Source: Octopus bimaculoides (lineage: Eukaryota). From it: a stretch of 64,000 nucleotides of DNA. Shown one piece after another: positions 18,496 to 26,110 of the stretch. Each line of letters begins with the position of its first letter. Position 1 is the first letter of the stretch. A program made the position numbers and the translations under genes. The stretch lies in NCBI RefSeq assembly GCF_001194135.2, contig NC_068987.1, forward strand, positions 12,629,900-12,693,899, given 5' to 3'. Under the pieces are notes generated by a model. That model ran no database searches, had not been told where the DNA came from, and saw only the letters and a list, made by a program, of their open reading frames with translations.

Positions 18496-18511
18496 CTTTG
18501 GGAGCAGCTTT
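18496..18511 (-). CDS. unc-22: Twitchin 16-nt micro-exon (KAAPK)
   Basis: tctttttactaatttccag|AAAGCTGCTCCCAAAG|gtaagta; phase 0 to 1. It bridges the E/K exon to the phase-1 exon at 12235. Confidence 0.75.
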
Positions 18512-19336: not shown

Positions 19337-19392
<56 letters not shown>

Positions 19393-19479
19393 TCATCATC
19401 ATCATCATCGTTTAACGTCCACTTTCCCTGCTAGCATGGGTTGAACGATTTGACTGAGGACTGGTGAAACCCGATGGCT

Positions 19480-19540
<61 letters not shown>

Positions 19541-19679
19541 CACACACATACACATACATACATACATACATACATACATGCATATATAATATACTCATTT
19601 GTGTAGATGTGTATATATATATGTGTGAATATATGTACACGTCTATATACAAATGTAAATAATTAACAAATTAACATAC

Positions 19680-20059
19680 TTCTTTCTTCTTCTTCTCTTC
19701 TTCCTCTTTCTTCTTTTTCTCTTCCTCTTCCTTTTTCTTTTTCTCTTCCTCTTCCTTTTTCTTCTTCTCTTCCTCTTCCTTTTTCTTCTTCTCTTCCTCT
19801 TCCTTTTTCTTTTTCTCATCATCCTCTTTCTTCTTTTTGTCATCAGTCTCCTTCTTCTTTTTATCCTCTTCTGCTTTCTTCTTTTCCTCTTCCTGTTTTT
19901 TCAATTCCAATTTCTTTTTCTCCTCTTCCTTTTTCTTGTCGTCTTCTTTCTTTTTCTTTTCTTTCTCTTCCATCTCTAATTTTTCTCTCTCCTCTTGCTT
20001 CTTTCTCTCCTCTTCCTTTCGTTGCATCTCTTCTTCTCTCTGCTTCTTCTTCTCGTCCT
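19680..20059 (-). CDS. unc-22: Twitchin exon, E/K-rich single-alpha-helix-like segment ending in (KKKKEEEE)x5
   Basis: atttattacag|AG GAC acceptor and GAA|gtatgt donor; 380 nt, phase 1 to 0; in frame with both neighbours. The 3' half is a 24-bp coding tandem repeat. Confidence 0.9.
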
Positions 20060-20099: not shown

Positions 20100-20900
20100 A
20101 GAACTTCAGCCATTTGACTGTGGCCATGCGGGAGCACCGCCTTTAATCAAACAAATCGACCCCAGGACTTATTCTTTGTAAGCCTAGTACTTATTCTATC
20201 GGTCTCATTTACCAAACTGCCAAGTTACAGGGACACAAACACACCAACATCGGCTGTCAAGCGATGGTGGAGGTACAAACACAGACACACAAACATACAA
20301 ATCCACTCACAAGGTTTTGGTTGCCCCAAGGCTATAGTAGAAGACACTTGCCCAAGGTGCCATGCAGTGGGACTGAACCCAGAACCATATGGTTGGGAAG
20401 TAAGCGTCTTACCACAAAACTATTATAATTGCCAGTCAAAATTCTGTGCAGACTATTATATTCAGCTTTTTTTTATTCTTTTATTCATTTACTTATTTCA
20501 GTCATTTAACTGCAGCCATGCTGGAGCACCACCTTGAGGGATTTTAGTTGAACAAATCAACTCCGGCACTTATTTTTTGTAAGCCTAGTATTTATTCTAT
20601 CAGCTCCTTTTGATGAACTGCTAAGTTATAGGGACATAAACACAACAACACCGGTTGTCAAGCGGTAATGGGAGACAAATACAGAAACAAAGACATGTAC
20701 ATAGATATATACATATATATATATAAATATATATATGTACAACAAGCTTCTTTCAGTTTCCATCTACCAAATCCACTCACAAGGCTTTGATTGGCCCAAG
20801 GCTATAGTAGAAGACACTTGCCCAAGGTGCCATGCAGTGGGATTGAATCCAGGGCCATGTGGCTGGGAAGCAAACTTCTTACCACACAGCCACACCTGTG
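20100..20900 (-). mobile_element. Two tandem copies of SINE family AB (about 20100-20415 and 20490-20900)
   Basis: Reverse complements of the AB consensus, located in the intron immediately 5' of the E/K exon. Confidence 0.8.
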
Positions 20901-21628
20901 CCTATCTTTTTTTTTTCATTAAAATGCTCTATCTATAAATCTGCTATTTATGAATATCATATCCTAATGTTATTACTAATTCAATGGAATAATTACCTGT
21001 CATATATTGGGACATGGAGGTGTGTGGTTTAGCGGTTAGAGTGTTGGTCTCATGATTGTAAGATTGTAGTTTCAATTCCTGGACCAGACAATAGTGTGAA
21101 AGTATGTGGCTTAGTCTTTAGAGTGTTGGACTCATGATCATAAGATCGCTTCATTTCACATTACTTCAGTCCACTCAGCTGGAAAATTTGGGTAATCCTG
21201 CAATGGACTGGAGTGCCATCTAGTGGGGAATATATGTATCACTGAAACTGAGAAACTGGCCCTATGAGTCTATATAACATGCGAAGGATCTTTATCCATT
21301 TTTATCCATCCTATCCATATTGAGGCAGATTCATATCGTATACCCAAGCCTAATCCCCATTTTTTTTTTAGGAGGAGGTAGCCACAGCAAGACACACCAG
21401 GCATTCCATTCATTTCCTAGCTCAAAGGGATGAGCCCCGTTCTATGTTCGGGATAAGGTATAGAATGCAACCCCCAATATCAACAGTGGGGCCCGACAAC
21501 ATATGCTGAGGCAGAAGGTTGGGTTAAATCAATGGACTTTATCTCCAAAGAATAACCTTGCACTTTAACAATAAATAGGGCTTTTGTTTTGTTTTATTTT
21601 ATTTTTCTTAGTTAAATGATTTACTTAC

Positions 21629-21872
21629 CTTTAACAATCATATTTGCTGATCCTTTTTCAGATCCAACAGCATTCTTCAATTCAACTGTGTATACGCCAG
21701 CGTCTTTTGGTGTTACTTTGGACATATAGAATCGAGCAGTACCTCTTTCATAAGAAATATTTACAGCTGAGGAACCTTTGATTTCTTTATCATTAAAATA
21801 CCATGTGGTGGTAATTGGTTCAGTTCCTGAAACTTTAAGTGTAATATCCATAGCCTCTCCAATAGTGAATGT
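21629..21872 (-). CDS. unc-22: Twitchin exon, remainder of Ig domain F (TFTIGEAMDITLKVSGTEPITTTWYFNDKEI...DAGVYTVELKNAVGSEKGSANMIVK)
   Basis: ttctcattacag| acceptor and |gtaagt donor; 244 nt, phase 0 to 1; canonical I-set pattern. Confidence 0.93.
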
Positions 21873-22969: not shown

Positions 22970-23031
22970 CTTTGATGTCAGCTTTGTGATGAATTTTGGA
23001 GCATCGCCCTTCACTTTAGGAGGGATCAGTT
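22970..23031 (-). CDS. unc-22: Twitchin exon, start of Ig domain F (QLIPPKVKGDAPKFITKLTSK)
   Basis: atcttttcag| acceptor and |gtaaga donor; 62 nt, phase 1 to 0; APKF A-strand motif. Confidence 0.9.
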
Positions 23032-23141: not shown

Positions 23142-23229
23142 GTGTTGATGATAATTTCATTAGCTGAACAGCTTCACCGAATGGTGTTTGAATTACACAT
23201 TTATAAGGACCAGCATCTTTTGTGGTAAC
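23142..23229 (-). CDS. unc-22: Twitchin exon, Ig domain E part 2 (VTTKDAGPYKCVIQTPFGEAVQLMKLSST)
   Basis: tttacctccag| acceptor and |gtatgt donor; 88 nt, phase 0 to 1; DAGxYKC motif. Confidence 0.92.
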
Positions 23230-25376: not shown

Positions 25377-25632
25377 CTCATCCACTTGCATGCTAGCATA
25401 GTAACTTGCATCTTTCTGTGACACATCCATCTTGTATCTCCCACCACTTTTCAAAGGAGAGTTTCCAAAAAACCATTGGGCAGTTGGTTTCTCCTTGCTA
25501 TCAACTTTCTGTTCAAATGTTACTCGTTTTTTATCCAGTTCAACTTTAGTTGTGGCTTTATCTGTTAACGTTATTGTCTTTTTCTCTTTATCTTTTTCTG
25601 CATCTTTTTCTGCATCTTTGTCCTTTTGTTGG
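25377..25632 (-). CDS. unc-22: Twitchin exon, charged linker plus divergent Ig domain E part 1 (QQKDKDAEKDAEKDKEKKTITLTDKATTKVELDKKRVTFEQKVDSKEKPTAQWFFG...YYASMQVDE)
   Basis: aattctttggcag| acceptor and |gtaatt donor; 256 nt, phase 2 to 0. The frame is open, with Ig core Trp and RYKM motifs. Confidence 0.92.
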
Positions 25633-25724: not shown

Positions 25725-25875
25725 GGCATGGCTATGTGGTAAGAAGCTTGCTCCCCAACCACATGGTTCTGGGTTCAGTCCCACTGCATGGCACCTTCAG
25801 CAAGTGTCTTCTACTGTAGCCTCGGGCTGACCAAAGCCTTGTGAGTGGATTTGATAGATGTAACCCGAAAGAAAC

Positions 25876-25927
<52 letters not shown>

Positions 25928-26110
25928 ATGTGTGTCTTTGTATCTGTGTTTGTCCCCCACCAGCACTTGACAACCAGTGTTGGTGTGTTTGCATCCCCAT
26001 TACTTAGCAGTTCAGTAAAAGATATTGTTAGAATAAGTACTAAGCTTTGAAAAATTAAATACTGGGGTTGGTTCATTCCACTAAAAAATTCTTCAGGGTG
26101 GTGCCCCTGC
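25725..26110 (+). mobile_element. Composite SINE: tRNA/CORE-like head, internal (TA)n(TG)n, conserved tail (family AB here)
   Basis: GCTxTGTGGTAAGAAGCTTGCT...GGTTCAGTCCCACTG..GGCACCTT..GCAAGTGTCTT head, then a microsatellite, then a TGTGTTTGTCCCCCACC..CTTGACAACC..AGAATAAGTACTA tail. Confidence 0.8.

Follow-up and report, generated by a model that had tools for sequence, protein, structure and literature searches.

The question raised by this stretch of the Octopus bimaculoides genome is what an exon composed almost entirely of glutamate and lysine codons contributes to the protein in which it is found. The exon (hereafter the E/K exon) lies on the minus strand of the 64,000-nt stretch that was analysed (the window, to which all positions refer unless another sequence is named), among exons for immunoglobulin (Ig) domains of the I-set type. 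The answer favoured here, which we regard as fairly probable when taken as a whole, is that it is a real exon of the giant muscle protein twitchin and that it encodes a single alpha-helix (SAH) of the ER/K type, which would serve as a spacer and low-force link. The argument begins from two features:

Window 19680..20059, minus strand: the E/K exon, 380 nt, entered in phase 1 and left in phase 0, encoding 127 residues that are predicted to form a single alpha-helix.
Window 19680..19838, minus strand: a near-perfect 24-nt repeat block (period 24 in Tandem Repeats Finder) at the 3' end of the E/K exon, encoding KKKKEDDE(KKKKEEEE)x5KKKKE, the C-terminal end of the segment, and holding a 21-nt indel between species.

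Read as the reverse complement, with a slash for each exon boundary, the E/K exon has the acceptor ttattacag/AGGACGAG (ttatttattacag/AGGACGAG) and the donor AAGAAAGAA/gtatgt, and its borders are cag/AGGACG … AAAGAA/gtatgt. The Ig exon upstream ends ...ATT GTT AAA G/gt, the split codon G+AG specifies Glu, and the joined reading is ...GSANMIVK-E-DEKKKQREEEM.... The product comprises 55 Lys, 49 Glu, 8 Asp, 4 Gln, 4 Arg, 3 Leu, 2 Met, 1 Ala and 1 Thr, with neither Pro nor Gly. According to Tandem Repeats Finder, a period of 24 nt runs through 19681..20054 (15.7 copies, 71% matches), and the final six units are near-perfect; comparison of the five KKKKEEEE units within the window finds five variable sites, all in third codon positions (0/0/5). 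Such an exon would have originated by amplification of a 24-nt unit of eight codons (K4E4). An earlier sequence-only reading had drawn attention to this exon, and its account of the coordinates, the 127 residues, the E/K makeup free of Pro and Gly and the terminal repeat proved exact when the translation and the splice sites were checked.

Whether such a tract encodes protein at all has to be decided on grounds other than its open frame, which is no evidence of coding because stop codons cannot occur in DNA made of purines alone and are few in any frame of a purine-rich tract: the coding strand of the E/K exon is 94% purine, with no stops in the coding frame and two and five in the other two frames. 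Against a chance tract it counts that the window has no other 100-nt stretch of at least 90% purine or pyrimidine, and that the splice phases of the exon fit both flanking exons. The orthologous exon of Octopus sinensis (L001 33731..34131, where L001 is the orthologous locus in GCA_006345805.1, contig VCDQ01001320.1) retains both splice sites and is 401 nt long, encoding 134 residues. Over 126 aligned codons the two exons differ at 22 nucleotides, distributed among codon positions 1/2/3 as 1/2/19 (binomial P of approximately 4e-7 for a third-position share of at least 19/22). These differences amount to 14 synonymous and 6 conservative codon changes (R/K, E/D four times, and T/V) and no exchange of Lys and Glu, although a single A<->G transition at the first position would suffice for one. 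The sole indel between the two octopuses is 21 nt long, in frame, and within the repeat block (127 versus 134 residues). Because of the third-position bias, the absence of any Lys-Glu exchange and the in-frame indel, the E/K exon is judged to be under purifying selection on its reading frame and specifically on its charge pattern. It is therefore regarded as a genuine, translated protein-coding exon, and from purifying selection we infer that it is included in transcripts. The proposal that its length is tuned by repeat slippage is borne out to the extent that a repeat indel separates the two species in frame, but the step is 21 nt rather than the 24-nt unit. A gene on the plus strand at this position was rejected from its reading frames, which are only the poly-Ser/Phe/Leu mirror frames of the pyrimidine tract; no search for splice signals or homologues was made on that strand.

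The gene to which the E/K exon belongs can be recognised from the exons around it, which are, in the order of transcription:

Window 25377..25632, minus strand: exon encoding a K/D/E-rich linker between Ig domains, together with the N-terminal half of the penultimate domain of the N-terminal Ig cluster.
Window 23142..23229, minus strand: exon for the C-terminal half of that domain.
Window 22970..23031, minus strand: small exon QLIPPKVKGDAPKFITKLTSK, which P0001 of O. sinensis also contains and which covers a linker and the opening strand of the last Ig.
Window 21629..21872, minus strand: Ig exon covering the greater part of the last I-set domain in the N-terminal cluster (Pfam I-set, E = 1.9e-16), which ends in phase 1, joins the E/K exon in frame, and matches residues 646-721 of Mytilus Twitchin and 566-642 of the Patella protein.
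Window 18496..18511, minus strand: 16-nt micro-exon AAAGCTGCTCCCAAAG, encoding KAAPK plus 1 nt (tttccag/AAAGCTGCTCCCAAAG/gtaagt), with both splice sites conserved in O. sinensis.
Window 12017..12235, minus strand: exon for a Pro-rich linker (AAEPEPKEEAPAPAPQQ...SRSPSP...YRKQPTTIFEYEE), entered and left in phase 1 and continuing the frame of the micro-exon.

The closest protein to the window, among the matches listed from a collection of 5.8 billion clusters, is P0001, "disorganized muscle protein 1, partial [Octopus sinensis]", with 93-96% identity over the Ig part; the name is no more than a best-match label on a model that is truncated. When P0001 was used as the query of an index-free HMMER search over 1.84 billion representatives, look-up of names led to a cluster containing the Twitchin of Mytilus edulis and of M. 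coruscus (represented by P0057, which shares 50% identity with the query), and further to Anopheles coluzzii twitchin isoform X7, a twitchin-like protein of Ptychodera flava, and Patella vulgata twitchin-like isoform X1. When the Mytilus edulis Twitchin model (P0174) and the Patella protein (P0283) were aligned to the window by tblastn, the exon matches were collinear from the second Ig to the Ig exon at 21860..21630, and the Mytilus match goes on with KQPTTI(L/F)E.EE at 12071..12018 (Mytilus 812-829; 61% over 18 residues), which at E = 0.45 is not significant alone and carries weight because its position is collinear. A weak further collinear match (TDGYEADED / SDGYEGDDD, E = 0.08) lies at 613..933. 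By collinearity with the Mytilus model the Ig before the E/K exon is the seventh, and it is the equivalent of insect projectin Ig8. The locus has the N-terminal cluster of tandem I-set Ig domains, orthologous to those of known twitchins, and after that cluster the low-complexity linker that leads to a conserved short segment (E/K exon, micro-exon, and Pro-rich exon with KQPTTIFEYEE) as expected in the twitchin family. On this sequence evidence the host gene is assigned as the octopus orthologue of twitchin (projectin in insects), of which the window holds the N-terminal part. The twitchin assignment of the sequence-only reading is thereby upheld by the collinearity with Mytilus edulis Twitchin and Patella vulgata twitchin-like X1 and by the common motif KQPTTI(F/L)E.EE after the linker, as is its placement of the E/K segment between the last N-terminal Ig and the Pro-rich exon (12235..12017).

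Downstream of the E/K exon the frame continues across the micro-exon into the Pro-rich exon (splice sites tcacag/CTGCCGAACC...GAAGAAG/gtaggt), the joined product reading ...KKKKE-KAAPK-AAEPEPKEEAPAPAPQQPLPTVNEPIADEEAGKIPKSRSPSPQFQAPNKDMPKKAKSPQPYRKQPTTIFEYEE. Skipping of the E/K exon and the micro-exon together, the removal of 396 nt (417 nt in O. sinensis), keeps the frame, as had been predicted and as the arithmetic and frame tests bear out; skipping of the E/K exon alone leads to stop codons, and skipping of the micro-exon alone shifts the frame. In that last case the second frame of the Pro-rich exon (12017-12235, minus strand) is open over its whole length (...LPNQSRKKKRPRPRHSS...), which is probably a coincidence of composition. 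There is no GT dinucleotide anywhere in the E/K exon, hence no canonical internal donor, and splicing could therefore tune the length of the segment only by all-or-none use of the exon as a cassette. Purine tracts of the GAR type are known exonic splicing enhancers; the E/K exon is one long tract of this type, and an enhancer effect would favour its inclusion.

The structure predicted for the segment follows from its charge pattern. Asp, Glu, Lys and Arg make up 116 of the 127 residues (91%), with a net charge of +2, and the charges are arranged such that pairs of opposite sign outnumber pairs of like sign at the spacings expected of an ER/K helix (93 versus 8 at i,i+4 and 81 versus 22 at i,i+3), the reverse of the relationship between immediate neighbours (31 versus 74 at i,i+1). 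The 174 opposite pairs at i,i+3 and i,i+4 combined compare with 103.9 +/- 7.2 in 20,000 composition-preserving shuffles, none of which reached the observed values (z = +8.1 for i,i+4 and +9.8 for i,i+3 and i,i+4 combined), and the charge autocorrelation peaks at 7.9 residues. The bias is not limited to the perfect repeat, because the irregular first 78 residues share it (44 opposite versus 8 like pairs at i,i+4). In the best heptad register only 3 of 36 a/d positions are hydrophobic. AlphaFold2, run on the E/K segment alone as a single sequence without the adjoining Ig, returned one helix from residue 2 to residue 125 with a mean pLDDT of 92.4 (range over five models, 83.5-92.4). The segment thus combines the charge content of SAH domains, their i,i+4 and i,i+3 pairing, the absence of Pro and Gly over at least approximately 30 residues, the absence of a heptad seam, and one predicted helix. 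Searches of the E/K exon against Pfam (no family) and against PDB sequences (only a meaningless match at E = 0.11), and a Foldseek search of the helix model against PDB structures (no match), say nothing either way when the query is a bare helix. Both (E4K4)n peptides and ER/K motifs form helices that are monomeric, and the E/K segment most likely folds, as modelled, into a stable monomeric SAH of the ER/K (E4K4) type. The sequence-only reading had called a single alpha-helix, named AlphaFold as a check, and named a coiled coil among the outcomes that would refute it: at the level of prediction the call agrees with every sequence measure applied here and with the uninterrupted AlphaFold2 helix, and a coiled coil finds no seam in the sequence.

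If the segment folds in this way, the helix would start right where the final beta-strand of the last N-terminal Ig stops (...ANMIVK/EDEKKK), without a Pro or Gly hinge, would be approximately 19 nm long (127 residues at approximately 0.15 nm each, from established helix geometry), and would be followed by KAAPK from the micro-exon and then by the flexible Pro-rich linker. In the resting state it would act as a semi-rigid spacer, keeping the N-terminal Ig cluster approximately 19 nm away from KAAPK and the Pro-rich linker. Under load it would become a low-force link, reversibly unwinding in series with the Pro-rich linker and possibly extending from approximately 19 nm towards approximately 45 nm without the steep rise in force of an entropic spring. 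Extension at low force is proposed because the unfolding of SAH domains is non-cooperative, takes place below 30 pN at a force that is nearly constant, and is readily followed by refolding (PMC4183817). For orientation within the sarcomere, in Drosophila flight muscle the tip of the thick filament is where the Ig5-8 epitope is found, at a distance of approximately 90 nm from the Z-disc (PMC9886278). The monomeric helicity of the octopus segment in vivo, its role as a spacer or spring, and the constitutive or regulated nature of its inclusion are matters that we infer.

Related proteins indicate how widely such a stretch occurs in the family. In all three RefSeq models of the limpet Patella vulgata (XP_055958000-2; twitchin-like X1 and unc-89-like X2/X3) the homologous last Ig is followed directly by an E/K stretch, ...LQVK-DDNKDKQKKEEEEKKKKAEADKKKKEEEDKKKAEEEKKKVEAQKKE, and the limpet protein, at 38.5% identity, is the best non-octopus match to a query of two octopus Ig domains. 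The limpet thus resembles the octopus in being a mollusc with an E/K stretch (DDNKDKQKKEEEEKKKKAEADKKKKEEEDKKKAEEEKKKVEAQKKE) directly after the last Ig, but its stretch is only approximately 46 residues long and less regular, and the models stop nine residues later; the two stretches may be homologous or convergent. The three Patella proteins (P0283, P0220 and P0284) consist of the N-terminal Ig cluster and the E/K stretch only, stopping after GNGSLVCIF. Together with the truncated O. sinensis model they hint either at a short N-terminal isoform of twitchin or at systematic truncation of gene models at a low-complexity exon.

Among insects, a sequence family 53% identical to residues 439-834 of Anopheles twitchin, with proteins of beetles, bugs and stick insects as its nearest named relatives, consists of projectin orthologues that continue after projectin Ig8 as ...KKKKEEEEKKKKELEEKKKKEEE.... 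When 57 insect orthologue sequences were aligned at the end of Ig8, nearly all were found to begin the unique region with an E/K-rich stretch of 20-100 residues free of Pro and Gly (KKKKEEEEKKKKELEEKKKKEEE in some sequences), and the structure predicted for one of them (P0003) has Ig domains followed by a helix at 389-461. Anopheles twitchin has an E/K/V-rich region at this position. Many of the insect orthologues (P0175-P0282) have a conserved motif, GPFDV(K/M)LK(K/P), not known to us from earlier descriptions, after the E/K-rich stretch; no motif of the GPFDVKLKK type was found in the octopus window. The sequence-only reading had suggested comparing repeat number across cephalopod and bivalve twitchins; among the molluscs compared here a similar stretch is present in the limpet Patella and absent from the models of the bivalves Mytilus and Sinanodonta. 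Octopus is thus not alone in having such a feature. As judged from these sequences, a K4E4 stretch is recurrent in the twitchin/projectin family, neither universal nor constant in length, and it is perhaps ancestral. A broader proposal, which we put forward tentatively and consider doubtful as it stands, is that a K4E4-type single alpha-helix after the last N-terminal Ig could be an ancestral and unrecognised mechanical module of twitchin/projectin across protostomes (octopus, limpet and many insects), lumped into the "PEVK" of insects, and that its length, changed through the 24-nt repeat and through cassette splicing, would tune the reach and low-force compliance of the Ig cluster to the geometry of the muscle filaments.

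The main rival to a helical link is an intrinsically disordered strong polyampholyte that would act as an entropic spring and form part of a PEVK-like linker. Its appeal lies in position, which is that of the projectin "PEVK" spring of the insect literature (PMC3835035), and in the low complexity of the segment, its variation in length between species, and the lack of a structured-family match from Pfam, Foldseek or PDB sequences. Springs of the PEVK and poly-E kinds are rich in Pro, however, whereas the E/K segment is without Pro, Gly and Val; a mere polyampholyte spring would not need a charge pattern tuned to i,i+4 and i,i+3 (93 versus 8; z of approximately +8); selection keeps the positions of Lys and Glu and not just the composition; and a pLDDT of 92 is far from the values below 50 that are usual for disordered regions. 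(E4K4)n peptides, moreover, are helical by experiment. The disordered spring is accordingly disfavoured, and we think it unlikely to be the correct description. Another rival is a two-stranded coiled coil that would dimerise twitchin, to which we give hardly any credence: residues that are neither charged nor Gln number 7 of 127 (3 Leu, 2 Met, 1 Ala and 1 Thr), and no register places hydrophobic residues in more than 3 of 36 a/d positions, notwithstanding that the segment is a long, uninterrupted helix-former of the kind that older predictors often mis-call as coiled coils. A classical coiled coil was rejected for want of a hydrophobic seam.

Two further possibilities concern what becomes of the exon rather than how its product folds. 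The helix might be mainly an electrostatic docking surface, with the rod of myosin or paramyosin, actin or some other protein of the sarcomere as its partner, or it might be the C-terminal tail of a short N-terminal isoform. SAH domains do also function as interaction surfaces (PMC5812594), and short products made of the Ig cluster plus a tail are hinted at by the Patella RefSeq isoforms X1-X3 and the partial O. sinensis model, all of which terminate with the E/K stretch or shortly beyond it; yet truncation in gene prediction may explain these short models, the sequence points to no particular partner, and the E/K exon is in frame with the micro-exon and with a Pro-rich exon bearing a motif common to the full Mytilus Twitchin. 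Improbable as the chief role of the segment, docking is compatible with a helix and does not exclude a spring. The alternative that the E/K exon is a GA-rich microsatellite mimicking an exon, a pseudo-exon or a rarely used or poison cassette that contributes nothing to the protein, would account for the open frame, which is expected from purine-rich composition, and for the omission of most of the exon from the O. sinensis model. It would leave unaccounted for the 19/22 substitutions in third positions (P of approximately 4e-7) without charge reversal, the in-frame indel, the retention of both splice sites in two species, the compatibility of phase with the exons on either side, and the equivalent stretches that are present in annotated Patella proteins and contiguous with Ig coding sequence in insects; it is very improbable.

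Several points weigh against a twitchin exon that encodes a helical link. AlphaFold2 readily gives helices for charged low-complexity sequence, and can neither separate a stable SAH from a marginally helical polyampholyte nor show that it is a monomer, and the SAH features were scored with proxies of our own. The published predictors are Waggawagga, SCAN4CSAH and FT_CHARGE, with a Waggawagga SAH score of at least 0.25 as the threshold for an SAH (PMC5812594). Among the matches listed from the protein collection there were no transcript-derived octopus proteins spanning the Ig and the E/K segment except the partial O. sinensis model, and that model (P0001), the only octopus gene model found, takes just the first 61 nt of the E/K exon. 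The gene models of Mytilus edulis, Sinanodonta woodiana and Batillaria attramentaria pass from the homologous Ig straight into P/E/K-rich repeats with no K4E4 stretch. The helix is therefore not indispensable to twitchin unless the exon was missed, and it may have been, as these bivalve and caenogastropod "absences" rest on predicted models. Finally, the Fn3-Fn3-Ig super-repeats and C-terminal autoinhibited kinase that define a twitchin lie past the low-coordinate end of the window, and the O. sinensis contig ends approximately 2.5 kb after the micro-exon.

In P0001 the E/K exon is exited through a GC donor, GAA/GCAAGA (the 61 nt being L001 33731-33791, window 20059-19999), and the model then reads the micro-exon (L001 35498-35514; window 18511-18496) in a different frame, as KLLPR. 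Because 61 + 16 = 77 nt is not a multiple of three, this exit is a model artefact or a frame-shifting minor isoform.

Other observations concern the introns and the remainder of the window. Approximately 40 nt downstream of the E/K exon donor begins a dense array of (AT)n, (ATC)n, (AC)n and (TACA)n microsatellites (19339-19640), and the intron diverges rapidly from that of O. sinensis past approximately 35 nt from the donor. An interspersed element recurs in the introns in both orientations (20118-20534 and 20705-20935, plus strand; 25735-26112, minus strand; and others) with ORF-like translations ...GFG(C/W)PKAIVEDTCPRCHAVGLNP.P.GWE..., and is probably a SINE-like repeat of the octopus genome. 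The Pro-rich exon encodes KSRSPSP (12100-12130, minus strand), a possible cluster of Ser phosphorylation sites in the linker. The motif of the Mytilus D1 site (RRPS) is found further downstream in the Mytilus model P0174, at approximately residue 1047, which is outside this window. A complete I-set Ig domain in a single exon (34161-34544, minus strand), 50% identical to residues 217-325 of Mytilus Twitchin, is left out of O. sinensis P0001, and nothing in the Patella model is collinear with it; the exon may be used alternatively or may have been overlooked in the model.

What the locus offers that is new is a candidate ER/K SAH, on the strength of prediction, in a new host family, twitchin/projectin; SAH domains as a kind are already known. 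In motors and cytoskeletal proteins they are recognised both as rigid spacers and as springs of constant force, and the elastic regions of giant invertebrate muscle proteins have been described only as disordered springs of the PEVK type. Among the papers searched, none was found that links twitchin or projectin with an SAH or single alpha-helix. If the octopus segment is a true SAH, twitchin/projectin would have a second, mechanically distinct element, of nearly constant force and without hysteresis, situated where the N-terminal Ig cluster leaves the part of the molecule that is bound to the thick filament, and the first "PEVK" exon of insect projectin would be due for re-reading. A natural near-perfect (K4E4)n whose copy number is unlike between sister octopuses would also provide a natural series in which helix length could be compared with sarcomere and catch mechanics. 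The practical reach is modest, in that the domain map of one protein family is refined and no new kind of system is added.

Among known systems, the nearest in position is the "PEVK" of insect projectin, which extends from the N-terminal block of eight Ig domains to NTCS-1 and the block of six Ig domains: it belongs to the same gene family and begins at the same place, right after the last Ig of the N-terminal cluster (PMC3835035), and it has been described as non-repetitive, alternatively spliced and elastic (PMC3835035) and is treated in the literature as disordered. The octopus exon differs from it in having 0% Pro, 0% Val and a perfect repeat, and only the exon at 12235..12017 is Pro-rich; judged by its sequence, the E/K exon occupies the "PEVK" position but is not to be classed as PEVK. 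The PEVK and poly-E elements of vertebrate titin are likewise charged, of low complexity, variable in length and located between Ig blocks of a giant sarcomeric protein, but titin PEVK, with its PPAK repeats, is disordered and rich in Pro, and poly-E carries a net acidic charge, whereas the octopus segment is Pro-free, balanced in charge (net +2) and patterned as a helix. In myomesin, helical linkers between Ig domains (My9-My13) provide an example of a helix directly after an Ig in a sarcomeric protein, and these helices unfold before the Ig domains and act as a strain absorber (PMC4142248); they differ in being short (approximately 20-25 residues), in not being block copolymers of E and K, and in being partly packed on the neighbouring Ig. 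From the ER/K SAH domains the octopus segment differs in its host, a giant Ig/Fn3 muscle protein rather than a motor or actin-binding protein, in being dominated by Lys with almost no Arg, in being known here from sequence and prediction alone, and in the near-perfect 24-nt tandem coding repeat with a copy number that is unlike between sister species. In other respects the likeness is close: more than 90% of residues are E, K, D or R, arranged in blocks of approximately four acidic and four basic residues with i,i+4 and i,i+3 ion pairs, there is no Pro, Gly or hydrophobic seam, the segment connects folded domains and is predicted to be an uninterrupted helix, and its final 49 residues are literally the designed E4K4 sequence.

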